A stretch of DNA of 64,000 nucleotides from Macrostomum lignano (taxonomy: Eukaryota). Numbering within the stretch: the stretch's first letter is position 1; every line of letters starts with the position of its first letter. Below, one piece after another: positions 1-45,900 of this stretch. Under the pieces are notes generated by a model that did no database searches, had not been told where the DNA came from, and saw nothing but the letters and a program-made list of their open reading frames with translations. Made by a program: the position numbers and the translations under genes. The stretch lies in NCBI GenBank assembly GCA_002269645.1, contig NIVC01000215.1, forward strand, positions 1-64,000, written 5' to 3'.

Positions 1-958
1 GAATGCACCCTTTTAAACAATGAACACTTCATTGATTAGACTAAAATTAACAAAATCTTTAGACAAAATATTGTGCCCCAATATTTCTGACAAAGTGTCC
101 TGGATGAAATGTCCTCAGACAAAATAACATAGATTCTGTGCGAGAACTATTTCCTAACAAATATGTTTATGTTTGTTTGCACTAAATGTTAGAACTATTT
201 TTTGTCAAACAACATAAGAAATATCTTAAGGCCTAATTTTTAGATTAATTTTATTTGTGTAGCTTAAGGTCCTTCACTAAAATATTTAAAGTGTTGCTAC
301 CAACTTATCAATATCAGTTTTTGTTTGGAAAAATACTAGTAAAACTTATTTAAATGTTTTATAAGAACTAGGCCTACAATAATGATATTGACATATTTTA
401 AGCCTAATTAAAAAAGCTATTCAATATGCTAGTAAATAAAAAGACCAATTTTTTGTCCTATATCAAATTGAGGTAAGGTAGCATGCTTTAGAAGGCAAAG
501 AAATATAAAAGAAATTCTGGATCCAAATTGAAAACAGGGTTTAGACTGCTAACACTGCTTTTACATTGCTATGCCTTTCTAAGTTACAAAAGTCTGCATA
601 TTTTTTTAGATTTTTAAAGTAAAGTATTAGAATTTTACTTCCATTTTACAAATATCAGTCTTGAAATCCAAGAATTTCAATATGATATATAATTATTAAT
701 ACCTGAAATAAAATATGAATTATAGAAAATATGGAAATTAAACTAAATGGTATCTAACTTTGAAGAAATACAAGGTGCCCATTTGGCATCCAAATTAGAG
801 TTCAGGATCAAGTTGATGTAAAGATGCATGCTATGGCAATAATTGTAGATAAAAAAATTTACATATTTACTAATCTGTAAATTTTTGCCTTTCTGATTAT
901 GTATTTATGATCTATTTAGGCAGCCACTAATTAGTTTTGGCATATCCAACTCGAGGAA

Positions 959-3900
959 ATGAGCTTCAGCAGTGATGAGGTCAACTTTCTCATCTATCGT
1001 TATCTGCAAGAGTCTGGTGAGAAAAGAATCTTATTCTCTGTTATTTATGGATTAATAAAGGCCATTTAATTACATATTCTGTCTCCAGTCCATACCAGAG
1101 GTTCCTATCACCCTCAGACTGGGTCTCCTATCCATACTAGAGGTCCCTATGGTCCTCAGGCTGGGTCTCCTATCCATGCCAGAGGTCCCTATGGTCCTCA
1201 GGCTGGGTCTCCTATCCATGCAGAGGTCCCTATGGTCCTCAGGCTGGGTCTCCTATACATGCCAGAGGTTCCTATGGTCCTCTCCTATACATGCCAGATT
1301 GCCAGAGGTCCCTAGTGTCCTCAAACTAGAATCCAAATGTCGTCAAGGACAACGCAGCCAGTCCCTTTGCCTCTGCTCTGTCCACCCAGGCTACCTGCAC
1401 TCGGCCTACATGTTCGGCATGGAGAGCCACATCTCCAGCACCAACATTAATGGGGCCATGGTGCCTCCAGCGGCCCTGCTGCAGATCATCCAGAAGGGCC
1501 TGCAGTACACCGAAGCTGAGATCAGCGTCGGCGAAGACGGCGGCGAACGGGCGGTGGAGTCTCTGTCGCTGATTGACTCGGTCATGCCAGAGGTGGTTGA
1601 GATGCGAAAGAAACAGCTGCTGGAGGCTGAAAAGAGCCGGCGTCTGAAGGTATGAGGCTCACTCTGCTGGGTGGGGACGAATACAGTCGGAGATAGTGAG
1701 ACACAGGGGATAGATTGAGAGACAGGGGTAGGGTGAGAGACACAGGGGTAGGGTGAGAGACACAGGGGTAGGGTGAGAGACACAGGGGTAGGGTGAGAGA
1801 CACAGGGGTAGGGTGAGAGACACAGGGGTAGGGTGAGAGACACAGGGGTAGGGTGAGAGACACAGGGGTAGGGTGAGAGACACAGGGGTAGGGTGAGAGA
1901 CACAGGGTAGGGTGAGAGACACAGGGGTAGGGTGAAAGACACGGGTAAGGTGAGAGACACAGGGGTAGGGTGAGAGACACAGGGGTAGGGTGAGACACAG
2001 GGGTAGGGTGAGACACAGGGGTAGGGTGAGACACAGGGGTAGGGTGAGACACAGGGGTAGGGTGAGAGACACAGGGGTAGGGTGAGAGACACAGGGGTAG
2101 GGTGAGACACAGGGGTAGGGTGAGACACAGGGGTAGGGTGAGAGACACAGGGGTAGGGTGAGAGACACAGGGTAGGGTGAGAGACACAGGAGACAGGGTG
2201 AGACAGGGGACAGTGAGACAGGGTGAGACAGGGACAGAGTGAGACAGGGGACAGTGAGACAGGGTGAGACAGGGGACAGAGTGAGACAGGAGACAGAGTG
2301 AGACAGGAGACAGAGTGAGACAGGGGACAGAGTGAGACAGGGGACAGAGTGAGACAGGGGACAGAGTGAGACAGGGGACAGAGTGAGACAGGGGACAGAG
2401 TGAGACAGAGGACAGAGTGAGACAGGGGACAGAGTGAGACAGGGGACAGAGTGAGACAGGGGACAGAGTGAGACAGGGGACAGAGTGAGACAGGGGACAA
2501 AGTGAGACAGGGGACAGAGTGATGACAAACCAGCCGCAACCCCTGTTCTCGCAGTCCGAGCCCCAGTCAGAGCAGCAGCAGCAGCCGCAAACGAATGGTG
2601 CAGCGGCCCATAGCAACAGCAACAGCGGTGGCAGCAATCATCATCACGGAGCTCACAGCGGCCACAATAGCGACAAGAACGGCGCCGAACTTGCTGGCGA
2701 CTTTCTTGACATCCCCGCTCAACGCGTCACGCTGCTTCGGGGCCACGAGTCTGAGGTGTTCATCTGCGCCTGGAATCCCCGCCAGGACCTGCTGGCGTCT
2801 GGCAGCGGCGACTCCACTGCCCGGCTGTGGGACGCCACTGATTTGGCCGCCGTGGCTGCCGGCGACTCGTCCAGGCGGATGGTGCTGCGGCACTGCATCA
2901 GCCGGGGCGCATGGACGTGCCCAGCAACAAGGACGTGACCTCGCTCGATTGGAATGTCAGTCTGGGCTTCTAATTTTTCTGTTAAATCTAGCGGCTTTGT
3001 GTCATTGGGATTTCTGCCATGGAATCCCCATCTAGTGGCTTGGGTCATGGGGATATCTCCCATGGAATCCCCATCTAGTGGCTTTGGGTCATGGGAATAT
3101 CTCCCATGGAATGCCCGTCTAGTGGCTTTGGTCATGAGGATATCTGCCATGGAATCCCCATCTAGTGGCTTGGGTTCATTGGGATTTCTGCCATGGAATC
3201 CCCATCTAGTGGCTTTGGGTCATGGGAATATCTCCCATGGAATCCCCATCTAGTGGCTTTGGGTCATGGGAATATCTCCCATGGAATCCCCATCTAGTGG
3301 CTTTGGGTCATGGGGATATCTCCCATGGAATCCCCATCTAGTGGCTTGGGGTCATGGGATATCTCCCATGGAATCCCCATCTAGTGGCTTTGGGTCATGG
3401 GAATATCTCCCATGGAATCCCCATCTAGTGGCTTGGGGTCATGGGAGTATCTCCCACGGAATCCCCATCTAGTGGCTTGGGGTCATGGGAATATCTCCCA
3501 TGGAATCCCCATCTAGTGGCTTTGGGTCATGGGGATATCTGCCATGGAATCCCCATCTAGTGGCTTTTGGTCATGGGAATATCTCCCATGGAATCCCCAT
3601 CTAGTGGCTTGGGGTCATGGGGATATCTCCCATGGAATCCCCATCTAGTGGCTTTGGGTCATGGGAATATCTCCCATGGAATCCCCATCTAGTGGCTTGG
3701 GGTTATGGGATATCTGCCATGGAATCCCCATCTAGTGGCTTGGGGTCATGGGAATATCTCCCATGGAATCCCCATCTAATGGCTTGGGATCATGGGGATA
3801 TCTGCCATGGAATCCCCATCTAGTGGCTTGGGTTCATGGGAATATCCTCCATGGAATCCCCATCTAGTGCCTGCACCTACGTAAATCGCAACACATTTCT

Positions 3901-6073
3901 CTGTTTGAAATTCGCGCCCTCCTAAACCGCAGTGCGATGGCAGTCGCCTAGCAACTGGATCGTACGACGGCTACGCCAGACTTTGGACCACTGACGGTGA
4001 GCTGCGCAGCCTTCTTACTTGGGGGGGGGGGGTTGATAGCATTTCCTGTTTGACCCTTTGTTATTAGCAGCTCTACTGCATTTGGCTGAACAGTCGCCCG
4101 CCAATCTGTTCACAGGTCAGCTGTCCCGCACTCTTGGCCAGCACAAGGGCCCGATATTTGCACTGAAGTGGAACAAGTCCGGCACTCTCATTCTGAGCGC
4201 TGGCGTTGACAAGGTGAGGCTAACCGATGATGCCATTTCTATTCTCTTTGCTCCACTGCAAACTTTGTTTTTAAGCGATAAGTTCCGTGTCAATTTTTTC
4301 AGACCACGATTATTTGGGATGCGAGCACTGGCCAGGCACAGAAGCAGTTCGCTTTTCACTCTGGTAATGAGATGTCTGATGAGTGTAGTAGGGGTGCTGG
4401 TGAGGTGCGAGACTTCGGAGAGAGGAATGCAAGAGTAAGGTGTGGGATTTCGTAGGAGTTGAGACTCAGGTGTGAAAAGTCAGAAGAGATGAGACTCAGG
4501 TGTAAGAATTCAGAGGAAATGAGACTCAGGTGTAAGAATTCAGAGGAAATGAGACTCAGGTGTAATAATTCAGAGGAAATGCAAGACTCAGGGTTGAGAA
4601 GTCAGTGAATGCAAGGGTACAGATGTGAAATTAATTACGCCGGTCGCCACTTCCAACAGCCCCGGCGCTTGACGTGGACTGGCAGAGCGACACAACCTTC
4701 GCCAGCTGCTCCACCGACCAGACCATCCAGGTGTGCCGCCTCGGTGAGGACCGGCCGATCAAGACCTTTCACGGCCACACCAACGAGGTCAATGCTATCA
4801 AGTGGGACCCGTTGGCCGCCTGCTGGCCTCCTGCTCAGACGACATGACCCTGAAACTGTGGTCCATGGACGGCAGGGCCAACCAGCCGGTGCACGACTTC
4901 AAGGCCCACCAGAAAGAGATTTATACAATCAAGTGGAGTCCAACAGGATACAGCACCTCGAATCCTAATGCTAATCTCTATCTGGCTAGGTATGTAGAAC
5001 CGCGGTTTAGCTTGCCAGTGACGAAAATAGCCGCTTCTTTCTCTGCTCGCTACTATTCAAGAATGCACAGTAGTGCAATTATCGCATCCACACGATTATT
5101 CCAGCGCCAGTTTCGACTCCACAGTCCGACTGTGGGACATCGAGGCCGGTCGCTGCTGCTACGTGTTCAGCAACCACCGGAGCCGGTGTACAGCGTGGCA
5201 TTCTCGCCCTGCGGCCGCTACCTGGCTTCCGGCAGTTTCGACAAATGCGTGCACATCTGGAGCGTCAGGGTTCGTGCTTTATTGAGACGAGTTTAGGGGT
5301 CCCTGATTCCCAGTATTGATCGCTTCCAGTCCAGGAGAGGTCCGAGGTCCCTGATTCCCAGTATTGGTCGCTTCCAGTCCAGGAGAGTTCCGAGGTCCCT
5401 GATTCCCAGTATTGATCGCTTCCAGTCCAGGAGAGGTCCGAGGTCCCTGATTCCCAGTATTGATCGCTTCCAGTCCAGGAGAGGTCCGAGGTCCCTGATT
5501 CCCAGTATTGATCGCTTCCAGTCCAGGAGAGGTCCGAGGTCCCTGATTCCCAGTATTGGTCGCTTCCAGTCCAGGAGAGTTCCGAGGTCCCTGATTCCCA
5601 GTATTGATCGCTTCCAGTCCAGGAGAGGTCCGAGGTCCCTGATTCCCAGTATTGGTCGCTTCCAGTCCAGGAGAGTTCCGAGGTCCCTGATTCCCAGTAT
5701 TGGTCGCTTCCAGTCCAGGAGAGGTCCGAGGTCCCTGATTCCCAGTATTGGTCGCTTCCAGTCCAGCTGAGCTCCAAGCTCCCTGATAAAACCATATAAA
5801 ACAAAAGCGGCATTTTCTCCGCAGACGGGCTCCCTAGTACACCGTTATCAGGGCACCGGCGGCATCTTTGAAGTCTGCTGGAATCACCGCGGCGACCGGG
5901 TGGGCGCCAGCGCTGCCGACGGGACGGTGAGGCTTTGGGTTTGAGATGCTTTTTACTGAGCTGAGACCGTCAAACTAAGTAGTAGGACTGTGGCTGAGAC
6001 CGATCCATATTTCATCCCGCCTTCCTTTTACCTGTTTCAGGTTGTCATTCTGGACTTGCGCAAGATGCAATAA
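959..6073 (+). CDS. TBL1XR1: TBL1/TBL1XR1 (ebi) LisH + WD40 nuclear co-repressor subunit; 10 exons: 959-1016, 1390-1649, 2555-2955, 3933-3996, 4116-4213, 4303-4363, 4660-4989, 5105-5269, 5825-5926, 6041-6073; three apparent -1 frameshifts (~2909, ~4811, ~5180)
   Basis: Translation begins [20 protein letters not shown]|YLHSAYMFG (LisH). It then contains [104 protein letters not shown] and GGIFEVCWN, and ends [10 protein letters not shown]. All introns are GT-AG with compatible phases; about 524 aa once three bases are restored. Confidence 0.95.
1085..1320. repeat. 42-bp minisatellite, TBL1 intron 1
   Basis: Unit CCATGCCAGAGGTCCCTATGGTCCTCAGGCTGGGTCTCCTAT, about 5 copies. Confidence 0.9.
1695..2520. 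repeat. Compound 20-bp then 17-bp minisatellite, TBL1 intron 2
   Basis: GAGAGACACAGGGGTAGGGT, then GAGACAGGGGACAGAGT. Confidence 0.95.
3000..3870. repeat. 44-bp minisatellite, TBL1 intron 3
   Basis: ATGGGAATATCTCCCATGGAATCCCCATCTAGTGGCTTTGGGTC, about 20 copies. Confidence 0.95.
4400..4605. repeat. 30-bp minisatellite, TBL1 intron 6
   Basis: GAGACTCAGGTGTAAGAATTCAGAGGAAAT and degenerate copies. Confidence 0.85.
5297..5770. repeat. 48-bp minisatellite, TBL1 intron 8
   Basis: GAGGTCCCTGATTCCCAGTATTGATCGCTTCCAGTCCAGGAGAGGTCC, about 10 near-perfect copies. Confidence 0.95.
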
Positions 6074-14100: not shown

Positions 14101-15350
14101 GGTCAGCACAAAGGCATAGCGATAGTCTATGGTCAGCTATGGCATAGCGATAGTCTATGGTCAGCCATGGCAAAGCGATATTCTATGGTCAGCCATGGCA
14201 TAGCGATATTCTATGGTCAGCCATGGCATAGCGATAGTCTATGGTCAGCACAAAGGCATAGCGATATTCTATGGTCAGCCATGGCATAGCGATAGTCTAT
14301 GGTCAGCACAAAGGCATAGCGATAGTCTATGGTCAGCTATGGCATAGCGATAGTCTATGGTCAGCCATGGCATAGCGATATTCTATGGTCAGCCATGGCA
14401 TAGCGATATTCTATGGTCAGCTATGGCATAGCGATAGTCTATGGTCAGCACAAAGGCATAGCGATAGTCTATGGTCAGCTATGGCATAGCGATAGTCTAT
14501 GGTCAGCCATGGCATAGCGATAGTCTATGGTCAGCCATGGCATAGCGATAGTCTATGGTCAGCACAAAGGCATAGCGATAGTCTATGGTCAGCACAAAGG
14601 CATAGCGATAGTCTATGGTCAGCCATGGCATAGCGATAGTCTATGGTCAGCTATGGCATAGCGATAGTCTATGGTCAGCCATGGCATAGCGATAGTCTAT
14701 GGTCAGCCATGGCATAGCGATAGTCTATGGTCAGCACAAAGGCATAGCGATAGTCTATGGTCAGCTATGGCATAGCGATAGTCTATGGTCAGCCATGGCA
14801 TAGCGATAGTCTATGGTCAGCACAAAGGCATAGCGATAGTCTATGGTCAGCCATGGCATAGCGATAGTCTATGGTCAGCTATGGCATAGCGATAGTCTAT
14901 GGTCAGCCATGGCATAGCGATAGTCTATGGTCAGCACAAAGGCATAGCGATATTCTATGGTCAGCCATGGCATAGCGATAGTCTATGGTCAGCACAAAGG
15001 CATAGCGATAGTCTATGGCCAGCACAAAGGCATAGCGATAGTCTATGGCCAGCACAAAGGCATAGCGATAGTCTATGGCCAGCACAAAGGCATAGCGATA
15101 GTCTATGGCCAGCACAAAGGCATAGCGATAGTCTATGGCCAGCACAAAGGCATAGCGATAGTCTATGGCCAGCACAAAGGCATAGCGATAGTCTATGGCC
15201 AGCACAAAGGCATAGCGATAGTCTATGGCCAGCACAAAAGCATAGCGATAGTCTATGGTCACCCATGGAATAGCGATAGTCTATGGTCACCCATGGAATA
15301 GCGATAGTCTATGGTCACCCATGGAATAGCGATAGTCTATGGCCAGCCCT
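11190..15350. repeat. ~4.15-kb intergenic satellite of 28/30-bp variant units with higher-order duplication
   Basis: CATAGCGATA(G/T)TCTATGGTCAG followed by CCATGG, CTATGG or CACAAAGG. Identical variant strings recur 1004 bp apart (13067 vs 14071). Confidence 0.97.
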
Positions 15351-15432: not shown

Positions 15433-18400
15433 CTAATCAATAGTTATTATATCTCTATTGATTCGAATCTTCTTTCGAGTCACTGTAGGCGGCGGCGGCG
15501 AAGGCGTCCGGGTCGGCGACACAGGCTCGCGCAGTCTGGCCGCCTCCTCCTCGGCCAGTGTCCGGTTCTTCCTATAATCCAGCAAGTCCAAGTCCGAGTC
15601 TTCGCTAACAAACTCTTCAACCTGAGGAGCTGCCCCGGCCAATTGTTTATCGACATCGTCCGACATCGACGTTGAGTCCGAGTAGTCTTCAGAATCGGAA
15701 TAATCCGACGAATACGATGACGAATGCCCGGAGCTCCGCCTCCGCCGGTGACGCCGGCGCCGCTTCTCTTTTTGAGCAGACCGACGATGACCGCGCTTAG
15801 AAGATTTTTTCTTCTTTTTCTTTTCCTTCTTCTTCTTCTCGGCCGATGATTTGGCTTTCTTTGATTTCTGCTCATGCTTGCGCTTTTTTGACAGTTTCTG
15901 CTGCTGTTGCTGCTCAGCGGGAGCATTCGGTGCGACCACCATTCGGCTGGCAGAAGCTTCCATAGGGATGAATTGTTGCTGCTGAGCAGGATGGGCAAGA
16001 AATTGCACCGCAGGCATGTACTGCACAGCGGACTGCCCAGCAACTGATACAGCAGCAGTAGTTGATAAGGACGCAACAGTCGGCTGCTGCTGAATGAACT
16101 GAGGCTGGCTTGGCATCACGTAGCAGTAAGGAGCGCCAGGCACTGGGGCGGCGTACATTGGCGCCGGAAATGCCGCCTGCGGCTGCTGGAATCCAACTGG
16201 CTGCTGCTGCGCCACTGACTGGCCGGCTAGCTGGGGATAGTAGGCTGCGACAGGGGCCGCCGGTTGCTATGGCAACGGGTGAGTATGAGAGATACAATAA
16301 TATTTTCGATACCAAACACTGAAAATTCAATACAACTTTAACCTTAAAGCTCATTGAACTGTTTTATTCGTTTGGCTCAGGGGATGTTTAACTGGATGCT
16401 CAGGGGATGTTCAGCTGGATTCTCAGGGGATGTTCAGCTGGATTCTCAGGGGATGTTCAGCTGGATTCTCAGGGGATGTTCAGCTGGATTTTCAGGGGAT
16501 GTTCAGCTGGATTCTCAGGGGATGTTTAACTGGATTCTCAGGGGATGTTCAGCTGGATTCTCAGGGGATGTTCAGCTGGATTCTCAGGGGATGTTCAGCT
16601 GGATTCTCAGGGGATGTTCAGCTGGATTTTCAGGGGATGTTCAGCTGGATTCTCAGGGGATGTTCAGCTGGATTCTCAGGGGATGTTCAGCTGGATTCTC
16701 AGGGGATGTTCAGCTGGATTCTCAGGGGATGTTCAGCTGGATTCTCAGGGGATGTTCAGCTGGATTCTCAGGGGATGTTCAGCTGGATTCTCAGGGGATG
16801 TTCAGCTGGATTTTCAGGGGATGTTCAGCTGGATTCTCAGGGGATGTTCAGCTGGATTTTCAGGGGATGTTCAGCTGGATTCTCAGGGGATGTTCAGACT
16901 GGATTCTCAAGGGATGTTCAGCTGGATTTTCAGGGGATGTTCAGCTGGATTCTCAAGGGATGTTTAGCTGGATTCTCAGGGGATGTTCAACTGGATTCTC
17001 AAGGGATGTTCAGCTGGATTCTCAAGGGATGTTCAGCTGGATTCTCAGGGAATGTTCAGACTGGATTTTCAAGGGATGTTCAGGCTGGATTTTCAAGGGA
17101 TGTTCAGCTGGATTCTCAGGATGTTTAGCTGGATTCTCAGGACGTACTTTTTCCATTGTGTTGCACAGAAAGTGCATTATATATAGTAACAGAGTCCAAG
17201 TAACGTGCTTACCAAATCCGGTAGGGAAGACTGGGGAAGCTGCGGCAACTGCATAGCAACACCTGTCTCATGCAGCGCCGGCCTAGCAATGCCAACAGGT
17301 CGGATCGCTGATGCCTCTTGTGACGCCGTCAACTGCTGCAGCTGCTGACGCCTGACAAGCGGCGCCTTTTGCACCACCGGAAATGCTGAACTGCTGCTAG
17401 ATTGAGCCGATTCAGGTTGAACCTGCGGCGCTTGAGTTTGAACCTGTGGTGCCTGAGGTCGAACCTGTGGTGCCTGGGGTCGAACCTGCGGTGCCTGAGT
17501 TTGAACCTGTGGTGCCTGAGGTCGAAGCTGTGGTGCCTGAGGTCGAACCTGTGGTGCCTGAGGTCGAACCTGTGGTGCCTGAGGTCGAACCTGTGGTGTC
17601 TGAGTTCGAACCTGTGCTGTCTGAGGTCGAACCTGTGGTGTCTGGGGTCGAACCTGTGGCACCTGAGTTCGAACCTGCGGCACCTGAGTTCGAACCTGCG
17701 GCACCTGAGTTCGAACCTGCGGCACCTGAGTTCGAACCTGCGGCACCTGAGTTCGAACCTGCGGCACCTGAGTTCGAACCTGCGGCACCTGAGTTCGAAC
17801 CTGCGGCACCTGAGTTCGAACCTGCGGCACCTGAGTTCGAACCTGCGGCACCTGAGTTTGGACCTGCGGCGCCTGGGAACCTACTTGAGATGCCCGAGGT
17901 CGAACCTGTGACACCTGGGGACGCACCTGCGGCACCGGAGGACGGGTTAAGGCATGGATAGTTATGTGACCTACGGAAATGATGGGTCAAGACAAAGCGC
18001 ATGCATTGCATAATAATGATAATATAATTGATTGAACCTGCCCTAATGGGAAGATGTGCAACCGACAGCTGCGTACGGCTGTTCAGTCCAAGGACTGGAG
18101 GTTGTCACACCCCTTAACTACCCCAGCAAACGCTGGCTCCCATTTCACAGATGGCTGAACTGAAGCAATGCAGAGTTAAGTGTCTTGCTCAAGGATACAA
18201 ATTGTTTCAGTGGGATCGGGAATCGAACCCCAGACCTTCAAGTCGTGAGTCCGACGCTCTAACCACTAGACTAAAACACTAACATTGCATGGATTGCATG
18301 AAGTGCGCAAGTGTGCAGTTTGGCGTACATTCATGCATTTATATAAGTACTTAAAAAGTACTTGACGGGTCGCTGGCTTCAGGTCTACTTTAAAATAAAC

Positions 18401-20534
18401 AAAAAGTAAACTGAAGACGCACCTGATTTTGAGGACGAACTGACTGCGAACTTTGCACTGCTTTAACCCGAACTTGAGCCGGCATCAGCGGCCGGACGTT
18501 AGCGGGCTGTGAGGCGACCCGCTTGATGCCAAATGGCAGCGGAGCGCCGATCTCTTGAGGCGCAGGCAATTCGGCGGTTGGCGAGCTAGCCGGAGGTGAA
18601 TCAGCCACGTCACCGGTTGACCAATTGGCGATAAGATCGCGCGCCCAATCGGGCATATGAACCGAGAGCACTTTTTCTTGAGCATGCGGCGGAGCTTGCT
18701 TTGGTGACGAATTTGCTTGCTGCTCTTCGTCTGACTCTGCTGAGCTGACTTCTTTTAGAAGGGATTTTAATAGCTGGTCTTTCTCGGCTTTGCTAAGCGG
18801 CTGTTTGCGCTTCTTTGCGGGAGGCTCCACCTCCTCCTGTTGCTGCTGCTGCTCTTGATCGGAAGGTGGCGCGCGGCGGACCCGACTAGGTGTAGGCGCC
18901 GCCGATGCAGGAATCTGGGACGGCTGCGGCTTCTGCTGCTGCGGTCTCTTGCGGACCGCAGTGCCCCGGCCTCGACTGCAAGAAGATTCGTCCTGCTGCT
19001 CCTGCTGCTTCTGCTGATTTTCGGACTCAGGTGTTGCCATCAATTCGTCAGGATTGCTAGCCTCATCTTGCTCAGCATGCAACTCAATAGCGTCATCGGA
19101 ATCGGCGCCACCATCGCCACCTGACGAGTTCATCGTATCGACAGCCGCGAGCAGGCGCTGTGTGATCGCCCGCTCCAGCTCCGGCGTCACTTCGTCATCT
19201 TCGGCTGCGGATCTTGCGGCCGCCGCCTCTTGCATTGCCCGCCTACGGTCGCGAGTTCGAGTCCTAGCCAAGCCTAAACTCATCTGCTGCTCAACCTTGG
19301 CTAACAGGTGCTGCATCACACCGGCCACCTGCTGCTCAATGTGCTCGTCATTCTCTACGGCATCGGCATCATCGCCAGACGTGGATGAGGAAGTGTCGGA
19401 CGACGAGTCACTGTCGTAGGCGTCGGAGTCGTCGCTGTCTGCCGTGGCTAATCGAGGCACGCCGGAGCCGGCCGCCGTAGTCGAGGCGGTGCAGTGAGCC
19501 AATTTGAGCATCTCGCCAAACGGATTAATGTAATAAAATACCCTCTTGCTGCCCTTAAATTCGTATTCGAAATGGCAGAATCCTTGGCGCTGCAATTCTC
19601 GCGACAGGGCTCCTTTGCGCTGGTCAAGCACAAGGATGAAAGCAAATTTAAGTCGCATTGTTTCCCAAAATTTCGGAGTGTGCACGGCAGCGTCAGTGTA
19701 AGACATAATAGCCACGTTGGCATTTGGCAGCTTGTCAATCGTTGCTTCCTCGACTCGTTCGTGCCAAAACTCTACACCGCTCGGACCGGCGGCTTCAACG
19801 CCGTTCATCGACACAACATAGGGACCCCAGCCAATGAACTGATCGATACCAATCAGCTTCACGTATTGCGTAATGCCGAAGCATTCGCGCAGCACAATAA
19901 GCATAGCGGCTACGCAGGGCCCCGGACCGCAGCCGATGCTAACTACTCTCTGTGTCCGGCCAAATATCTCAGTGAGCTGATCGGCGATGCCAGACTTTGG
20001 CGACATTAATTGTCTTAGCGACAGCCACACTGTCTGGATTCTACTGCGGAATAAGTTCAAAGTGTACACGGCTCTCCAGCCCGATAGTTTATACATAAAG
20101 CTGACGTCTAATTTGTCTGGCGCGTCCTTCCATGTGTTGAATAAGCGTCGCATATCTGTGCGCTGGGCTATTGGCATGTGCTTTAGATAGCGCTCGGCCA
20201 CGGCGTACACAGCTTTGCAATAGGATTCGCATTTCTTATCGATCTCTTTTATCATAGCAGCCGATGATGGCTCATTATTAGCTGATGATGAAGCACTCGA
20301 ACTAGCTGGCGCAGCCGGTTTGCGCTGCTCAAGCGACAGTTGCTGACAGGAATTTGAGCGAGCTAGAGGCGCCAGCAAGCCGCCGCCACCTCCGCTACTG
20401 CTGCTACTCCTCGGCAGCAGGTTGGCTGGTGGGCGCATAAATAGGCCGCCGCCAAAATTTGCCTGCTGCTGTTGCTGCTGCTGGCGCAACTGCAACTGCT
20501 GCTGCAGTATATATGAATGACCCGGTATTGGTAG
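15433..20534 (-). CDS. Uncharacterised ~1,220-aa low-complexity protein with a class I SAM-dependent methyltransferase-like domain; exons 20534-18423, 17926-17213, 16266-15433 (all phase 0); 5' end unresolved
   Basis: Three long GC-rich ORFs join in frame through canonical sites: cag|gtgcgt ... ccgcag|gtg, and ttg|gtaagc ... ccatag|caa. Exon lengths 2112, 714 and 834 are all multiples of 3. A globular segment carries VVSIGCGPG (motif I-like), IGID and IMSY; the rest is Q/S/D/K/R-rich. Confidence 0.7.
16375..17140. repeat. 23-bp minisatellite, last intron of the MTase-like gene
   Basis: GGGGATGTTCAGCTGGATTCTCA, about 33 copies. Confidence 0.95.
17420..17926 (-). repeat. Coding 21-bp repeat (QVRTQVP/QVRPQAP heptads)
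   Basis: CAGGTTCGAACTCAGGTGCCG and variants, inside an exon bounded by canonical splice sites. Confidence 0.85.
18011..18282 (-). mobile_element. tRNA-derived CORE-like SINE, copy 1 (intron of the MTase-like gene)
   Basis: Reverse complement of 63558-63868; box A/box B head, CORE-like middle and (ATT)n tail; flanked by a CATTGCA duplication (18004-18010, 18283-18289). Confidence 0.8.
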
Positions 20535-21734
20535 CTGAAATCATTAGCATTCAGATTATATAATAAGCCTATCTTGCTTGGTTAGGAGTGCTAGGATTTT
20601 ACAAAAACCCCAGATTGATAGAGCACAACCAGGAATAAAATTTTTGGGATTGGAGATATTCAGGGTAATTAATCTTTCTTGTCAACAATTATCATCAAAT
20701 ATGTGGATGCAAAACTTGACATAATAAGGTGAAGTATATGACTTTCAAATTTGTTTTAATGACGAAAAAAGCTTGCCAATTGGTTCAGCTACAATGTACA
20801 GTACATTAGCCATTGAAATCTACAAGGCAGATTTAGGCTAAAATAGCTAAGGAAGATAATAAAAATTGGGTGGCAGAGTAGGGGCAGAGGTTCTATATAG
20901 AGTTTGAAGGGTTTAAGCTAATGGCACGAGCCAATAATAAGCATTGTCTTTAATACTTAAATGTTACAGTTTAACTCAACACTAAACTAAAAATAGCTAG
21001 CACAGAAATGTGCTTAGTGTCTCATCTAGTTAATCTAGTATCTGTGAACAAAAGTCATGTTTTTATTGAATCTTTACATATGATAGGGACTTTGGTAAGG
21101 GTCCTATGACTTGTCAATATACATATAAGGCAAACTTTGAAAAGGAGTTTTTTTACAAATAAATAATTTTGCAATACAATTACATTGAATAAAAAGCAAC
21201 TAGGAATTAAAAAGAAGAGAAAAAATACTTTGTCATAAAGAAAAACCTTATTCAAAAAAAATTATCCGTTTTCCTTGGAATTTCATTGGGATGCTAATAA
21301 TCTCTTATAAAAAATAGCTTTTAAAAAACATTGAAGAAAAAAATAGATGCTTTTGTATTCTAAAAAATGAAAAAAATTACCAAGTTCTAGCATTTATAAT
21401 GAAGTCATTATAAAATACACAGACAAGATAATATACCTTTTATCTAACTAATCTTTTATTGTAAAACACAAAATATTTATGAAATTTTTAATGTTTTTAT
21501 TCTTTAATAGGTTAACTTTGTTGCTCCTTCGAGTTAGGAAATTAGTTAGTAGTTAGGAAAACTTCTAATATGATAAAATATTTCTATTACAAAGAAAAAG
21601 GAAATAATTATATACTATAAAAAATGGCAGTGTTTTTATTCCTATGGTTTTCCCATATATTTTATGAACAAAACAGACATTTAGGCTTTCTTGCAAAGGT
21701 TTTCACTATTTCAGCTATTCTATTCTTTTTACTA

Positions 21735-29537: not shown

Positions 29538-30726
29538 TCATTCAACAGACAGAAGTTCAAAGTTGAGGCCAAAGAGGCACTCATCCAAAACCCGTGGAGC
29601 ACCATCCAAGGGGTAGACGTGCTTTAAGTCCTGGAAGAACTCATGGATGAACTGTTTCATTTCTTTGTTACGGTGGGAGCGGTACATTAGCTCGACTAGG
29701 TATGAAGCGAAGTGTAGTGCGCTAGTTCCACGCATGTTCTTAAATTTGGCTTTTGCAGTACCCCAAAAGCCCTTAAAATGCGATTTGTGTGTACATCTTT
29801 CTTCTCGCCGTTTCGTTCAATAGTCGTCTTAAAGTGCTCTTTGTGGCAGACAACCCAGTGACTGTAACCCATGTGTTCCAAGTCAAGGTAAGCAGACCAG
29901 CCGTCGCTGAATACAGTCATTCCGGGGAGAATGAACTTCTCAATTAAAGGTAGAAGAGTTTCTTTTGATCTGTTTTCAATAGGCCAAATGACAGTACGGC
30001 CATCGTGTCTGTCTGTCATGCCGAAAATCCAAATTTGTTGGCCCAGTTTCGCACCTTGGTTATATTTCATCTTTCGGCCAAAGAGGGACTCATCTATTTC
30101 AACGATATGTCCAACACCACCAAGAGAGATCGTATCTCGACGTGTCTTGAACCATTCACACATTACATCTCGAATGAAGTGGCCCCGTTGCATGGCTGCC
30201 TCCGCTTCAATGCCGTACATGGCGCGCAGTGAACTGTGGGTTATAATATGGATGCACCCCCCTCAGTTTCGGAAGGCAATCATTCTTAATGTAATTTGTA
30301 CATTGTAATGATCGTCAACCGAAAGTACATGGCTTACCTTTGCGGAGTGTTCAGAAGATAACCAATGCAGTACCCAATGATGTCCATTGGATTCAGTTTA
30401 GAATTCTCGAAAAAAGTTCCCCTTCTAATGGAGACTCTTTTTTCATGTGCTCCAAATGGCAAACCAGCTCCCTTCTTGCACCGGAACACGACGCCGTCTG
30501 TCGAATTATGGGCCTTGACAATGTTCATTGACGATGCACAAATAGGGCAGGGCATGGTTTCCGGAAGCAGTCCTTCTCTTTGAAGAAGGCCAATCCAGTT
30601 TTCAGCTGTAATAAAGCGCCATGACATGGGACACACCAGTTCCTCGATATGCTCCAGTGGCTTCAAATCAACAAACGAGCCGGCACCTTCAATTTTCTGT
30701 TCTTTGGCAGGTTTTGAGCATGCCAT
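29538..30726 (-). pseudogene. Merlin transposase; exons 30726-30338 and 30233-29538, with one frameshift near 29775
   Basis: N-terminal zinc-ribbon-like CPIC...FRC, then GHIVEIDES, VFSDGWSAY and HTNRI|(E)GFWG, typical of IS1595/Merlin transposases. 104-bp phase-2 intron (ag|gtaagc ... cacag|t). Confidence 0.88.
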
Positions 30727-37959: not shown

Positions 37960-38495
37960 ACTTTTAAGAGACTTAAGCCTGATTAAGCACTAATTTGATG
38001 CTTCAAAACTTGTTATAATGTATCTGACCCCAGAAAGCTGCAATAGTCTATGGCCAAAAAGTTTGAACATTTTTTGACTTAAAAAAGGTCTATAGTAAGT
38101 CTAAATATCAATGATCTTTAGCAAGTTGACAAATAACAAAAGACTTAGAGTAAAGTTCTAAATTTAGCAAGGCTATACTGCGCACCATGCATGGGACTTT
38201 ACAAGCCCTATTTAAAACATACTTAGAGGAATTGTGGCATCAACTAAACCTAGTGAAGCCATTTGGGAATATCCGATTATGGATTTCCCACTACTATAGT
38301 GTATAAAGCTTTTGTTGTTTGTTCATTGGCAGTTTGACCATAGACAATAGTACTTTTTATTTGTTTCTGTTAAGACTTGTTTATTTGTTAACACTTTGAC
38401 CATAGACTATTGTAGCTTTTCAGTGTCAGATACATTATAACAAGTTTTGAAGCATAAAATTAGTTCTTGATTAAGCTTAAGTCTCTTAAGAATAG
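37960..38495. mobile_element. MITE/foldback with ~105-bp inverted arms
   Basis: TTAAGAGACTTAAGC...GCTTCAAAACTTGTTATAATGTATCTGAC...AATAGTCTATGG at 37960-38060 is inverted at 38395-38495. Confidence 0.75.
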
Positions 38496-40049
38496 CTATT
38501 TGTACTTTTTAATATTTAATAAAAAGAAATAATATTTAATAATAAGAAATAATATTTTATAATAATGTAAAAGCTTTCTAATCTATTTAAATGTCAAATA
38601 GCCTATTTATAGCTTTATACCTTGTTGCCATTTTGAATATTGCCAGATCCTTTGTTGCCAGATCATCTTGTTGCCAGATTGACTAGATACCCTATGGCAC
38701 AAAGCACTTTGTGGTAGGGCCTACAAGCTACACTTGCAGCTATAGAGATATTAAGGTAGCCTCATTGAAAAGCAAGCCTAGCAAAATATAAAATTGTAGC
38801 TTGCCTTATCTAGCCTTGCTATTCAAATGCCTATAGTAGCTTTTTATATCATTTTATCTAGATAAAACTTTCTTATAGAACAGCCAAAGATATTGATGTT
38901 TTCTATAGTACACATGACGCTTGCTAGCCAAGGGTTTCATACATAAATATACAATTATATACAAATATACAAATGAACAACCTAAAACAAAATATTTATA
39001 GACCTAATACATATTGTGAGTTTAAATATTTTTTATTGCTTATATTGCTAGCCTTCAAATTGTTGAAGACTAGAATTATCTTTGCAATAGGCAAGTAGTG
39101 TAAGGCCATTAGCCTCAAACAAAAGCTATGTTATTTCATTCTAATTGTAAGACTCTTGGAAACCCAAGGGTCTAGATTTTTCTAAATATAGACTATGTCC
39201 AATGAAAGCTACATCAATTGATATTCCGATTTTGGGGAAACACTTGATGGCAACTTTTATGTTGTGCAGCTTTGTAATCCATAACAAAGTTAAAATGGCT
39301 TTGCCTTAGGTAGGATGCCTCAAAAGGCTCATAAGACTTATAATCTTTTGACATTTAACCAGATATAAAGACAAATGTCAGTGGCACTTGTATAAGCAAA
39401 ATATATATGTAAATGGCATATTTTAAGGTGTATGCAACCAAAAAATGTGCTATCCATATACCATGTTGTGGCCTTCTTCAAAAGCTAAATTTGGCACTCT
39501 TTGGCTAAGAAAAGGTGGTGCTTCCCATGCTTTCTAATATCTGCTCTATAGATAAATGTGAATAGCTATATACAATCATTGTAACATTCATGTAGGTACA
39601 ATATAGCATGTAATGCATATAAACAATAAAATATTAATTTGGCATCTTATTCAAATTTATAATATATATACCAAAATGCCAGGCACCATTGCACCAAAAA
39701 GCATAGGCACTAAAAAGCATAGAAACCCTATAGAAATAAGTGGCCTGTATACTTTAAAGGCTTGTATGTTTGAATCCCATATATATGTCTAGTCAATTTA
39801 TACTGTCTAGACTATGTAGATAAAGATAAGATTGAGGTTAAAACTATTTAATGATCTGTACTATCAAGAAATTAAGCAAATAATTCAATTCACTTTAAAT
39901 AAGCAACATAGTCTACTATGGTCTAAACAACTATAATAGTATTCATTAGAATATTGGGTCACAATGCATTTTATATAAAAGCATTTTTTTCATATACTAA
40001 AGATGGTTGTCTTACAGAAAAGCTCAATCGATTTTTTAAACTTTCACCT

Positions 40050-41034: not shown

Positions 41035-41613
41035 ATGGCTGCCAAGGTGAAACGCTATCGCGGCTTCTACGAGGCGGCTGTGCACCCCATCTACTACAAG
41101 ACCAACATCCCGGCCCAGCAGGCCAAGCCCGCCCCGCCACTTGGCCCGCAGCTGGGCAAGCGCGGCATCAACATACCCAGCTTTTGTAAAGATTTCAACG
41201 AGCGAACTAAACATATTAGGCCGGGCGTTCCCATACCAACGGTGGTGTTTATTAATCCCGATCGGAGCTTTGTACTTCAGCTGTACCATCCGCCAACGTC
41301 CTTTTTAATTAAGCAGGCAGCCGGTATTAGCAAAGGCGCCACAGATCCCATGAAAGAGGTGGCCGGTATGGTTACTAGGCAGCATATCTACGAGATTGCC
41401 CAGCTAAAGCAGCAGGATCCGCCGTTGCAGACGATGCCGCTGCGCTCTATTGTTGAAATGGTGATCCAATCGGCAAGGAGGATGGGCGTGCTGGTGGTGG
41501 ACAGCATTGACCCGGCTGAGTACGCGGTCTTCTTGGAGAAACGAGCGGAGGAGCTGCGCCAGATGCGCGAGGAGCTGGCGGCATTGAAGAAGGCTAAGAT
41601 GGCTAAAATTTGA
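41035..41613 (+). CDS. MRPL11: Mitochondrial ribosomal protein L11 (uL11m), intronless, 192 aa
   Basis: IPAQQAKPAPPLGPQLGKRGINIPSFCKDFNERTKHIRPGVPIPT and PPTSFLIKQAAGISKGA are L11 family signatures with a eukaryotic mitochondrial-type length. Confidence 0.95.
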   Translation: MAAKVKRYRGFYEAAVHPIYYKTNIPAQQAKPAPPLGPQLGKRGINIPSFCKDFNERTKHIRPGVPIPTVVFINPDRSFVLQLYHPPTSFLIKQAAGISKGATDPMKEVAGMVTRQHIYEIAQLKQQDPPLQTMPLRSIVEMVIQSARRMGVLVVDSIDPAEYAVFLEKRAEELRQMREELAALKKAKMAKI

Positions 41614-41834
41614 CCTTACTTGTTGAATGCCTCGCTTTTTTTCCGAGTTTAGAAGAACAGCGCAATGATAGATGAACTAGTTAAGCATTTTTGTCTGCTT
41701 CCTACTACTAATAATCAATATTTATAATTTGAAATATAGTGTTTTGCATCTGATTGCGTTTGTAGCTTTATGAATGCCAACCTATTGGCTGAGATTGAAG
41801 TGTTCTATTATTATATAAGCAAATGTAGTCACAG

Positions 41835-42845
41835 CCTCCTTCCCAAATAGAATCGCCTCCTTCCCAAATAGAATCGCCTCCTTCCTGAATAGAATCGCCT
41901 CATTCCCAAATAGAATCGCCTCCTTCCTGAATAGAATCGCCTCATTCCCAAATAGAATCGCCTCCTTCCTGAATAGAATCGCCTCATTCCCAAATAGAAT
42001 CGCCTCCTTCCTGAATAGAATCGCCTCCTTCCCAAATAGAATCGCCTCCTTCCTGAATAGAATCGCCTCATTCCCAAATAGAATCGCCTCCTTCCTGAAT
42101 AGAATCGCCTCATTCCCAAATAGAATCGCCTCCTTCCTGAATAGAATCGCCTCATTCCCAAATAGAATCGCCTCCTTCCTGAATAGAATCGCCTCATTCC
42201 CAAATAGAATCGCCTCCTTCCTGAATAGAATCGCCTCATTCCCAAATAGAATCGCCTCATTCACAAATAGAATCGCCTCATTCCCAAATAGAATCGCCTC
42301 CTTCCCGAATAGAATCGCCTCATTCCCAAATAGAATCGCCTCCTTCCCAAATAGAATCGCCTCATTCCCAAATAGAATCGCCTCCTTCCCAAATAGAATC
42401 GCCTCCTTCCCAAATAGAATCGCCTCATTCCCGAATAGAATCGCCTCATTCCCAAATAGAATCGCCTCATTCACAAATAGAATCGCCTCATTCACAAATA
42501 GAATCGCCTCATTCACAAATAGAATCGCCTCATTCCTGAATAGAATCGCCTCCTTCCTGAATAGAATCGCCTCCTTCCTGAATAGAATCGCCTCCTTCCT
42601 GAATAGAATCGCCTCCTTCCTGAATAGAATCGCCTCCTTCCTGAATAGAATCGCCTCCTTCCTGAATAGAATCGCCTCCTTCCTGAATAGAATCGCCTCC
42701 TTCCTGAATAGAATCGCCTCCTTCCTGAATAGAATCGCCTCCTTCCTGAATAGAATCGCCTCCTTCCTGAATAGAATCGCCTCCTTCCTGAATAGAATCG
42801 CCTCCTTCCTGAATAGAATCGCCTCCTTCCTGAATAGAATCGCCT
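41835..42845. repeat. 21-bp minisatellite between MRPL11 and ADAM10
   Basis: AATAGAATCGCCTCCTTCCTG and variants, about 48 copies. Confidence 0.97.
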
Positions 42846-42940
42846 TTTCAATTTCGTCCACAATAGAGCCAAGCCATCCCACACTTGCTCTCCAGCGCAG
42901 TTGCCCTGGCGCGGAGTTGCAGTGAGCCGCAGCAGCCGCA

Positions 42941-45900
42941 ATGACTGCCCAGCGCCGCAGCCTCAGCCGCCTGTTGCTAACCGCTGCCCTACTAGCTGGC
43001 GCCGCCGCGTCTTTGTTTAACTGCGTCTCCGGGCGAGCCTACGGCCCCCTAGCAACCACGGAGACGGTCACAGATCACGACCGGCTGCGCTATCCGCCGC
43101 TGGACCTGCCGCCTGGCCGGCTGCACCGGGCCAGGCGAAGTCTCGGCCACTCGGCCGATCCAGTCTGGTTGGAGTTCTCCGCCCACGGCCGGCATTTTGT
43201 GCTCAAATTTTCTCATAACGACGGCTTAGTTGAACCCGGCGCCACCTTTCAATTGGGCGCCTCGGGCAGTCCGGAACCCTTAGATTTTCCCGAAGCTGTT
43301 GTCGGCGAGTTGGCCGACGATCCGGGCAGCCACGCGTTCGGCAGCATCATAGACGGCGTGTTCAGCGGCGCCGTGTACACCTCAGACGGGTCCGGCTGGT
43401 TTGTTGAACCGGCTGGTAGGTACTTTCTCGGCCGGCTCGACTTTCATTCGATTATTTACAATGACTCGCACGTGATGTGGCCGAAACGGCACCGGCGGTG
43501 AGTGCAAGCTTGCGTGGCTTAATCATAAAATATAATAATAATTGTTGGTTGTGGGGCAACCTTGGCAGAACCTTGACAGAACTTCGTCCTGCCTGCTGCT
43601 TCTGAGCGCATTCCTGAGCGCATTCAAGCGCGCCAATACTGCGCTCAGACACGCACTTATGCACGCGCATACAAAACACAGTACACTTTCTTGCACGGGA
43701 AGGGGAGTCAGACTGGTTTACCGCTGAGCTGCTCCGCCACTGGGACAGAGGCTTCTCTTGTTGGACAATTCACACAGAATCCCATCTGGTGGCTCTGCTC
43801 CCAGTGAACGACACTGACCTGTGATCACCTACCCCACTCATTTCACACCCGTGATCACCCATTGCACTCAATTCACACCCGTGATCACCCACCCCACTCA
43901 ACTCACACCCGTGATCACCCACCCCACTCAATTCACACCCGTGATCACGCACCCCGCTCAATTGACACCCGTGATCACCTACCTGACTCAATTCACACCC
44001 ATAATCACCCACCCCACTCAATTCACACCCGTGATCACCTACCTGACTCAATTCACACCCATAATCACCCACCCCACTCAATTCACACCCGTGATCACCT
44101 ACCTTACTCAATTCACACCCGTGATCACGCACCCCGCTCTATTCACCTGTGATCACCCACCCCACTAAATTCACAATCACACCCGTGATCACCCACACCT
44201 CTCAATTCACACCCGTGATCACCCACCCCACTCAATTCACCCGTGATCACCCACCCCACTCAATTCATCCGTGATCACCCACCCCACTCAATTCACCCGT
44301 GATCACCCACCCCACTCATTTCACACCTGTGATCACCCACCTCATCCCCAATTCAGCTCGGTGATCAGGCATCCGCCTGCCGTGCACCCGCCGCTGCCGC
44401 CCCCATTCACCGCTGACAAATCGCTGTTGCCGGACAGTGGCGAGGTCGGCCAACTAGGCGACACGAAGGTGTGCTCGCTCTACTTGCAGTCTGACGCCGC
44501 TCTGTGGGAGGCCACCCTCCGCCTGCCGTCGGTGAACGGCAATCACCAGCGGGCGCGCACGGAGATCAAAGCCCTGTTCCAGCATCACGTTAGCGCGGCG
44601 ACTCATATCTACACGTCTACTAGGTTTATCACTCGAGACAAAAAGTTCGAACAGCGGGGCGTACAGTTTCGGGTTAATCGAATACGGGTTAACACTACGG
44701 CGGATTGCGGCCCGGGCAAGAATAATCCGTTCTGTGCCGAGGGTATCGACGTTACCAGCTTCTTGAATTTGCACGCCTATAGCAACCATTCGGAGCACTG
44801 CTTGGCCTACCTGTTCACTTATCGGGACTTCAGCGGCGGCACGCTGGGCTTGGCCTGGGTTGGCACCAAGGATCAGAATGGCGGCATCTGCGAGAAATAT
44901 CGGGAATACGAGTGAGTGGCTGTTTGTGTCTGCTGTTCTGGGGCTCTGGTTGAGGCTTCAGGTTGAGGCTTCATGTTTAGTTCAGGTTGAGGCTTCATGT
45001 TTAGTTCAGGTTGAGGCTTCATGTTTAGTTCAGGTTGAGGCTTCATGTTTAGTTCAGGTTGAGGCTTCATGTTTAGTTCAGGTTGAGGCTTCATGTTTAG
45101 TTCAGGTTGAGGCTTCATGTTTAGTTCAGGTTGAGGCTTCATGTTTAGTTCAGGTTGAGGCTTCATGTTTAGTTCAGGTTGAGGCTTCATGTTTAGTTCA
45201 GGTTGAGGCTTCATGTTTAGTTCAGGTTGAGGCTTCATGTTTAGTTCAGGTTGAGGCTTCATGTTTAGTTCAGGTTGAGGCTTCATGTTTAGTTCAGGTT
45301 GAGGCTTCATGTTTAGTTCAGGTTGAGGCTTCATGTTTAGTTCAGGTTGAGGCTTCATGTTTAGTTCAGGTTGAGGCTTCATGTTTAGTTCAGGTTGAGG
45401 CTTCATGTTTAGTTCAGGTTGAGGCTTCATGTTTAGTTCAGGTTGAGGCTTCATGTTTAGTTCAGGTTGAGGCTTCATGTTTAGTTCAGGTGTGGCTTTA
45501 GGTTAAGTTTAGGTGTGGCTTCAGGTTAAGTTCAGGTCAGGCTGTAGGTTAGGTTCACGTGTGGCTTCAGCTTAAATTTAGGTGTCTTCAGGTTAAGTTC
45601 GGGTCAGGCCTCAAGTTAAGTTCAGGTGAGGCTTCAGCTTAAATTTAGGTGTCTTCAGGTTAAGTTCAGGTCAGGCCTCAAATTAAGTTCAGGTGAGGCT
45701 TCAGCTTAAATTTAGGTGTCTTCAGGTTAAGTTCAGGTCAGGCCTCAAATTAAGTTCAGGTGAGGCTTCAGCTTAAATTTAGGTGTCTTCAGTCAGGTTA
45801 AGTTCAGGTCAGGCCTCAAGTTTAGTTCAGGTGAGGCTTCAGCTTAAATTTAGGTGTCTTCAGGTTACGTTCGGGTCAGGCCTCAAGTTTAGTTCAGGTG

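Follow-up and report, generated by a model that had tools for sequence, protein, structure and literature searches.

Class I S-adenosylmethionine (SAM)-dependent methyltransferases are built on a seven-stranded sheet of strand order 3-2-1-4-5-7-6 with flanking helices, in which β7 runs antiparallel within a β6-β7 hairpin, and an acidic residue at the C-terminal end of β2 binds the ribose of SAM. The described family to which the gene reported here can be traced, remotely, is that of yeast Bmt6 (YLR063W); the 3-methyluridine (m3U) of animal 28S ribosomal RNA (rRNA) is reportedly made by SPOUT1/Ptch, which is unrelated to Bmt6. The Pfam family PF11312 (Methyltransf_34, formerly DUF3115) is tied to EC 2.1.1.312, the 25S rRNA (uracil2843-N3)-methyltransferase (PMC5307852). 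The enzyme with this EC number is Bmt6, a Rossmann-type and mainly cytoplasmic methyltransferase reported from "lower eukaryotes," and only in yeast is it known to form m3U in large-subunit rRNA (PMC3950682). Here, we analyzed a stretch of 64,000 nucleotides from the flatworm Macrostomum lignano (contig NIVC01000215.1 of assembly GCA_002269645.1, positions 1 to 64,000 of the forward strand), which we call the window. An earlier reading of its letters, the original prediction, had placed an orphan methyltransferase-like domain at 18423-20534, inside a large disordered protein of nuclear appearance. We found a three-exon gene on the minus strand whose product joins a predicted class I methyltransferase domain to a tail of about 870 residues. 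The explanation that we consider likely as a whole is that this M. lignano gene combines the class I domain of a Bmt6-related flatworm family with a disordered tail of nuclear type, has been inherited vertically and serves to transfer methyl groups to nuclear RNA. A literature search by gene and protein identifiers found no paper on this gene.

The ordered segment that had been proposed at 19530-20240 is present, with a real extent that is slightly wider (residues 94-348; Table 1). AlphaFold2 gave a poor model from the single sequence (predicted local distance difference test [pLDDT] of 40) and a model with a pLDDT of 76.5 and a predicted template modeling score of 0.76 when supplied with an alignment of 73 sequences. 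In the latter model, a helical N-terminal region (domain residues 2-99; adding 93 to the domain numbering gives the protein numbering) is followed by seven strands in class I order that alternate with helices, and the chain ends in a β6-β7 hairpin (domain residues 227-233 and 236-242). A Foldseek search of this model against the PDB returned 140 matches at E≤1e-3, and all 50 of the matches listed are proteins of the class I SAM-methyltransferase fold, including precorrin-6Y methyltransferase, RmtC/RmtB, TrmN, MnmC2, TrmK, METTL16, METTL17, METTL21C, and O-methyltransferases. Their template modeling (TM) scores are 0.4-0.5 and their identities 8-16%, and none among the 50 listed is specifically close. 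By sequence, no relative was found in the PDB with the single protein, with the profile of the flatworm family described below, with the diatom protein P0036 alone, or with the diatom profile. Residues 94-348 are thus predicted to fold as a SAM-dependent methyltransferase of class I (Rossmann type) that is extended by helices at its N terminus. Since the AlphaFold2 model and the Foldseek matches both point to this fold, the objection that the domain is not a Rossmann methyltransferase fails, and the class I assignment made by the original prediction stands.

The residues expected of such a fold are also in place. The four motifs VVSIGCGPG, KLIGIDQF, VAIMSY, and ILVLD, which had been recognized earlier, are all present and follow one another in class I order. 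In an alignment of 15 family members that holds flatworm-type sequences only (A1), G201, G203, and P204 of motif I are invariant and G205 is kept in at least 90% of members. At the end of β2, D231 of GIDQ is invariant across flatworm and diatom sequences and is followed by an invariant W236. S278 in the region of motif IV is nearly invariant, and an invariant W290 precedes ILVLD, whose D304 (D211 in domain numbering) is invariant within the flatworm-type family (A1). Expressed in domain numbering, the positions that are invariant both in A1 and in a further alignment, A2, are G108, G110, P111, D138, W143, and W197. Judged from these residues, the cofactor-binding signatures, namely the GCGPG loop after β1 and the invariant Asp that ends β2, are intact.

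With the domain alone as the query, a word-seeded search returned no match among 5.8 billion proteins, and a full index-free HMMER search of 1.84 billion representative proteins returned 17 homologues at E≤1e-3, which indicates that the domain is more than a chance resemblance. Every named member of this family comes from a flatworm: M. lignano (several loci), Hymenolepis diminuta, H. weldensis, Heterobilharzia americana, Trichobilharzia regenti, and Protopolystoma xenopodis. Several other members come from ENA, Logan, or JGI assemblies and carry no taxon. One candidate, P0006 (1300 aa, 15 matched stretches), was ruled out as a relative and is a translated tandem repeat. The members of the family are spread over four classes of flatworms and have diverged deeply from one another (22-25% identity), and M. 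lignano itself holds three or more of its paralogous lineages. The description of the domain as an orphan is therefore right insofar as it is restricted to a lineage but does not hold in the sense of a single-species orphan, and the names of its homologues agree with the lineage specificity that had been proposed. Two members hold UniRef names, "FERM domain-containing" (P0001) and "N2227 domain-containing" (P0005), and neither name has Pfam support at E≤10.

A rough neighbor-joining tree without support values divides the family into three groups, which are a long form (the window gene, P0002, and P0003), an ENA/Logan group, and a short stand-alone form of ~250-390 aa found in M. lignano and the parasites. 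The short-form paralogues (PAA88952.1, PAA48315.1, Hymenolepis diminuta VDL19351.1, and those of Heterobilharzia, Trichobilharzia, and Protopolystoma) are like the window gene in that they extend from the N-terminal helices to β7 and keep the same invariant residues, and those of M. lignano share one genome with it. On the other hand, they are only 22-25% identical to it, stand alone without a tail, form a separate clade in the rough tree, and read IGVGPG in motif I and LPDADM.VFSF in β4.

The original prediction had not recognized the architecture as that of any conserved animal methyltransferase. A remote relative, the Bmt6 family (Methyltransf_34, PF11312), can be traced through diatoms. 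When the A1 profile was searched against 5.8 billion proteins, it found two diatom-type proteins (E 7e-6 and 2e-5), and the profile with these two added found 223 proteins, the named ones of which are nearly all from diatoms. This family of hypothetical diatom proteins (for example, from Skeletonema, Thalassiosira, Nitzschia, and Seminavis; P0035-P0154) is the nearest detectable outgroup and shares the motif I SIGCGPG. Comparison by hhalign of the flatworm family (A1) with 70 diatom proteins gave a probability of 98.7% and an E of 2.7e-16 over 134 columns, from the helix before motif I to β4, and the alignment breaks down behind β4. Within it, both families have a helix Y..(F)R..Y....F..RA before motif I, a GCGPG-type loop, the Asp that ends β2, and a β4 of the form D....SY. 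The diatom proteins differ in their length of ~360-450 aa, in a K/R-rich coiled N terminus and a C-terminal WLDSS...GR.GP module, both of which are lacking in the flatworm family, and in having no long disordered tail like that of the window protein.

Against PF11312, for which the Pfam gathering cut-off is 26 bits, 22 of the 70 diatom members give a match (seven match Methyltransf_23), and the five members that were checked score 24.3-27.9 bits, with two of the five passing. The M. lignano short-form paralogues match the same region of the profile weakly (E 0.018-0.07, 12.8-14.7 bits), and the window protein has no PF11312 match at E≤10. The only Pfam family touched repeatedly by family members is PF11312, and it and the flatworm family are both of the class I Rossmann type. 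From these profile comparisons, we consider the flatworm family to be a remote relative of the Bmt6 family and not a member of it by the Pfam criterion. The window protein is unlike Bmt6 in that it is an animal protein, has an 870-residue disordered tail with nuclear-type signals, and is only ~20% identical to the bridging diatom proteins. As an observation apart from this, the large diatom family P0035-P0154, with SIGCGPGCDA as its motif I, sits at the PF11312 threshold, so that most of its members are without Pfam annotation.

Outside the domain, the protein is of a very different character. It had been proposed that the domain is fused to low-complexity regions of a condensate type; long low-complexity regions are present, with basic tracts that resemble nuclear localization signals (NLS). 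As for the flanks listed by the original prediction, the polyQ/S and acidic tracts lie within 18423-20534 as described, but the 21-bp repeat and the K/R/S-rich tail lie in the two downstream exons. Compared with PAA74335.1 (P0002), a paralogue in M. lignano, the domain is identical at 211 of 254 positions (83%), whereas the tail, which is rich in Q, A, P, and S, is identical at 215 of 755 (28%, with 269 gap columns) and the N-terminal tract shares 13 of 55 aligned residues. An acidic tract at residues ~361-400 has a net charge of -13 per 40 residues, and the tail alternates between acidic stretches (-13, -11, and -9 per 40 residues) and basic ones (+8, and +22 at KKKKEKKKKKKSSKRGHRR...RRRRHRRRR). 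A K/R/H tract comparable to the last of these is present in P0002, and the basic tract at 15730-15897 is a candidate nuclear or nucleolar targeting signal. The minisatellite that encodes PQVRTQV has no counterpart in the paralogue; since the latter has non-repetitive P/Q/R-rich sequence at that position, the repeat is probably young, an expansion that a disordered region could tolerate. The tail is disordered and evolves fast; what it retains are basic blocks of NLS-like and nucleolar-like type, tracts of acidic residues and of Ser, and three short conserved islands. The gene shows how a compact enzyme domain can remain under strong constraint within a protein of which fast-evolving disorder, with a young coding minisatellite in it, makes up 70%.

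All of the features listed originally are present, but the gene lies on the minus strand. Its three exons (20534-18423, 17926-17213, and 16266-15436) join in frame to give 1,219 codons, and the acceptor of exon 3 is CCATAG/CAA at 16266. A public M. lignano model, A0A1I8IXL6 in UniProt (P0001), has 98% identity over the domain and is placed on the window by tblastn at 20342-18447, 17929-17213, and 16266-15436, where its residues 818-1094 correspond to exon 3 with 100% identity (tblastn) and its exon 2/3 junction, LPDL/QPAAP, is the same. Since this model spans all three exons of the window, they are already joined in a public record. The public model reads VHRLRSGPC where the window has motif I, VVSIGCGPGPC (19917-19946), changes frame within the 21-bp repeat, and omits the conserved island PPAKKRKQPLSKAEKDQLLKSLLKEV (18747-18824); these discrepancies are probably assembly or annotation errors of an older assembly. 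PAA74335.1 (1217 aa) has the same layout as the window gene and, together with the mapping of P0001, bears out the three-exon model. The gene is a genuine nuclear gene of M. lignano, and the genes in its neighborhood are ordinary animal ones, encoding a TBL1-like WD40 protein, an actin-related protein, mRpL11, an ADAM, and RME-8.

The gene's 5' end suggests trans-splicing. Reading from 20534, the first ATG in any of the frames is the internal one at 20438. Directly before exon 1 stands TTTCAG (20535-20540), and two codons upstream there is an in-frame TGA. In the AT-rich 20 kb to the right of exon 1, no coding exon farther upstream came to light. The open reading frame (ORF) that begins at the ATG at 20438 has no record of its exact product in the gene-position collection. 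In M. lignano, ~30% of genes are trans-spliced to a 35-nt leader that ends in ATG, and the motif enriched at spliced-leader acceptors is [T/C]TNCAG (PMC8629364). TTTCAG fits this motif, the ATG of the leader would be in frame with the CTA CCA ATA that starts at 20534, and the record of the paralogue PAA74335.1 is "5'-partial" and likewise starts with LP. Since these observations coincide with the lack of an ATG before 20438, we propose that the start codon is probably an AUG donated by a trans-spliced leader at the TTTCAG acceptor.

How the parts of the protein most likely act together can be stated conditionally. The basic blocks would direct the protein to the nucleus and perhaps to the nucleolus, the conserved islands would bind partners, and the domain would pass a methyl group from SAM to nuclear RNA. 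A nuclear or nucleolar location is suggested by the composition of the tail. We hold the parts of this proposal with unequal confidence: catalytic activity is somewhat probable, RNA as the substrate is tentative, and an m3U-type activity on rRNA is quite doubtful. An extension that we offer as speculation, and consider rather improbable, is that flatworms (schistosomatid flukes, tapeworms, and monogeneans) hold private Bmt6-derived methyltransferases, absent in other animals, that write a lineage-specific mark on rRNA or nuclear RNA, and that in the Macrostomum branch the enzyme became fused to a nucleolar-type tail that would concentrate it where its substrate is made.

Other explanations of what the domain does have to be weighed against nuclear RNA methylation. 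The protein could be a pseudo-enzyme or SAM sensor that has kept the fold, and perhaps SAM binding, but lost methylation and uses its disordered tail to act as a scaffold or a sensor of metabolites; SAMTOR is a SAM sensor with a Bmt2-type fold. The N that the window copy has at the start of β4, where the family mostly has D, would fit such a loss, as would the fact that β4 shows no catalytic motif typical of a known class of substrates, (D/N)PP(Y/F) being one example, and the short conserved islands of the long tail suggest interaction functions. However, the glycine loop and the ribose-binding Asp are invariant, the identity to the paralogue is 83% in the domain and 28% in the tail, and class I enzymes do not universally use the residue at the β4 start for catalysis, so we regard a pseudo-enzyme as unlikely. 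Somewhat more credible, though still on the unlikely side, is an active methyltransferase that modifies, instead of RNA, a small molecule or a protein, the latter for example at Lys, Arg, or His in a nuclear protein. The 50 listed Foldseek matches mix RNA, protein (METTL21C), and small-molecule methyltransferases at similar scores, and at ~20% identity to Bmt6-like proteins, substrates are not conserved by rule. On the other hand, the only family that can be reached by sequence is an rRNA methyltransferase family, several of the top structural matches are rRNA or transfer RNA (tRNA) enzymes (RmtC/RmtB, TrmN, MnmC2, TrmK, METTL16, and METTL17), and the K/R blocks would suit nucleic-acid binding. 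The same matches raise the question whether the gene is a diverged orthologue of METTL17/Rsm22, METTL16, or another conserved methyltransferase of animals, since METTL17 (8csr_7) has the highest query TM-score (0.49) and METTL16 is among the matches listed. We find this highly improbable. The root-mean-square deviation from METTL17 is 10.9 Å over 303 columns, which is no better than for unrelated methyltransferases; no Pfam match to Rsm22 or to any METTL family appears at E≤10; and the named phmmer matches include no animal protein from outside the flatworms. RmtB/RmtC (16S 7-methylguanosine-1405 [m7G1405] methyltransferases), METTL17/Rsm22, METTL16, and TrmN resemble the domain in predicted fold (Foldseek E 1e-5 to 1e-4) but with TM-scores of 0.4-0.5, identities of 10-15%, and no relationship at the level of sequence. 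An Rsm22-like identity, which had been raised earlier, thus dissolves into a generic likeness of fold, while the view that the gene is not an orthologue of a conserved METTL-type gene agrees with the Pfam and PDB searches.

Two further alternatives concern the origin of the gene and its surroundings. The original prediction had suggested that the domain was possibly acquired horizontally; the donor could have been bacterial or, in an ancient transfer, a protist, for instance of a diatom-like lineage. Points that could be read in this way are that the domain is intronless within one 2.1-kb exon, that the short-form M. lignano paralogue P0034 is a single-exon gene, and that the nearest detectable outgroup is the diatom family and not an animal one. 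However, none of the 17 HMMER matches is prokaryotic, and a pattern scan with the single domain in 185,579 bacterial and archaeal genomes gave 137 pattern matches, none of which was confirmed. The composition is that of the host: the GC content at third codon positions is 0.58 in the gene versus 0.61-0.77 in neighboring genes, and the correlation of codon use with the neighbors is 0.67, within their own range of 0.58-0.85. The family also occurs across four flatworm classes with deep divergence, and identity to the diatom proteins is only ~20%. Since these searches brought no prokaryotic relative and the composition is native, the family probably descends vertically within flatworms and not from a recent horizontal transfer; we regard acquisition of the domain by transfer as very unlikely, and nothing favors an ancient exchange with a protist lineage. 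The gene also adjoins a block that had been described as showing cytosine decay, and as a matter of composition this is real: region 20535-40900 has 34% GC, a CpG observed/expected (o/e) ratio of 0.42 versus 1.07 in the exon, and a (TpG+CpA) o/e of 1.21, and the CpG o/e falls to 0.09 at 38001-40000. That the gene encodes a DNA cytosine methyltransferase responsible for this depletion of the neighboring 20-kb block is hardly credible. The domain has no PF00145 match and no PCQ or ENV motifs, and no DNMT is among the 50 listed Foldseek matches. The CpG o/e is just as low in many other non-coding stretches of the window (0.29-0.36 in 1-4000, for example), and the block itself consists of AT-rich repeat and transposon DNA. 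The missing signature and the other CpG-poor stretches contradict the methyltransferase as the cause, and the suggested link between the two is not borne out.

Several observations weigh against our preferred reading, a vertically inherited, Bmt6-related methyltransferase that acts on nuclear RNA. Pfam searches with the exon and with the whole spliced protein assign the window protein to no family even at E≤10, and this includes PF11312 and the generic methyltransferase models. The AlphaFold2 model depends on an alignment that is dominated by diatom sequences, and with TM-scores of 0.4-0.5 the structure points to no particular substrate or enzyme class. At the start of β4, the window copy has N273 in place of the D found in the paralogue and in most members. 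Only an indirect path connects the domain with Bmt6, leading from the flatworm family through the diatom family to a borderline PF11312 match. Four ENA/Logan members carry no taxon, so the family is not proven to be confined to flatworms. In the gene model, the exact acceptor of exon 2 is uncertain among repeated CAGs, and the 5' end is provisional.

These findings provide a first classification for a set of flatworm "hypothetical proteins" as a class I SAM methyltransferase family for which there is no Pfam model. The occurrence of the family in parasitic flatworms, together with the failure to detect it in vertebrates at the present sensitivity, gives it a modest practical angle: if the speculation of a private flatworm enzyme is true, and if the enzyme is active and essential, the short form of the parasites would be an enzyme without a host counterpart. 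In other respects, the gene is a routine example of a methyltransferase that is divergent and confined to one lineage.

Table 1. Features of the methyltransferase gene and of its surroundings in the window. A slash marks a splice junction; TRF, Tandem Repeats Finder.
Feature	Position	Strand	Details
Coding exon 1	18423-20534	minus	Open frame, 704 codons; N-terminal Q/S/G tract, methyltransferase domain, and first ~355 disordered residues
Exon 1 donor	18423/18422	minus	CAG/GTGCGT; strong donor
Intron 1	17927-18422	minus	From splice sites
Coding exon 2	17213-17926	minus	238 codons; PQVRTQV repeat (21-bp minisatellite), then unique Q/A-rich sequence
Exon 2 splice sites	17926 (acceptor), 17213 (donor)	minus	CCGCAG/GTG and TTG/GTAAGC; in frame with exons 1 and 3
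Intron 2	16267-17212	minus	23-bp minisatellite inside, 16376-17141 (TRF); period not a multiple of 3
Coding exon 3	15433-16266	minus	277 codons plus TAG stop (15433-15435); P/Q-rich, basic, and acidic/Ser tracts, C-terminal island
TTTCAG	20535-20540	minus	Candidate spliced-leader acceptor directly upstream of exon 1
N-terminal low-complexity tract	20256-20534	minus	Residues 1-93; polyQ, polyS, polyG
Methyltransferase domain (predicted)	19491-20255	minus	Residues 94-348
Motif I, VVSIGCGPGP	19917-19946	minus	Glycine-rich SAM loop after β1 (domain residues 103-107)
Motif II, KLIGIDQF	19836-19859	minus	β2 (domain residues 133-137), ends in D231
Motif IV region, NVAIMSY	19698-19718	minus	β4 (domain residues 181-185)
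ILVLD	19623-19637	minus	β5 (domain residues 206-210)
Conserved island 1, PPAKKRKQPLSKAEKDQLLKSLLKEV	18747-18824	minus	NLS-like KKRK and short helix-like motif; kept in P0002 and P0003
Conserved island 2, EKVLSVHMPDWARDLIANW	18621-18677	minus	Aligned with ERVLSVKMPEWAQSLIHSW of P0002
21-bp minisatellite	17419-17875	minus	TRF, 21.8 copies, 93% match; encodes PQVRTQV
Basic tract, KLSKKRKHEQKSKKAKSSAEKKKKEKKKKKKSSKRGHRRSAQKEKRRRRHRRRRSS (KKRKHEQKSKK...RRRRHRRRRSS)	15730-15897	minus	Net charge +22 per 40 residues
Conserved island 3, EEFVSEDSDLDLLDY	15574-15618	minus	Matches LEFVSEDSDLEQLNY of P0002
23-bp minisatellite	16376-17141		33 copies; intron 2
30-bp minisatellite	15000-15347		11.8 copies; just 3' of the gene
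Further minisatellites	1406-2637, 5265-5813, 41782-42882, 44860-45501, 47905-48579, 53508-54647		
IS1595/ISXO2-like DDE transposase ORF	29696-30220	minus	PF12762, E 2e-17

Some further features of the window deserve mention. Beside the transposase ORF of the AT-rich block lies an ORF at 30334-30726 (minus strand) that has no Pfam match. Neither ARAGORN nor Rfam at its gathering threshold found an RNA gene in the window. A tRNA-like stretch in intron 1, at 18208-18280 on the minus strand, scores 23.4 bits (E 0.016) against Rfam RF00005, for which the gathering score is 29; it receives no ARAGORN call, occurs as one copy in the window, and is probably the head of a tRNA-derived short interspersed nuclear element. 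The mRpL11 gene at 41035-41613 on the plus strand (192 aa; Ribosomal_L11_N and Ribosomal_L11, E ~1e-24) is apparently intronless, and the gene-position collection has no record of its exact product. Minisatellites are unusually abundant in the window; one of them, the 21-bp array, has expanded within coding sequence, and several yield long spurious repeat ORFs on both strands.

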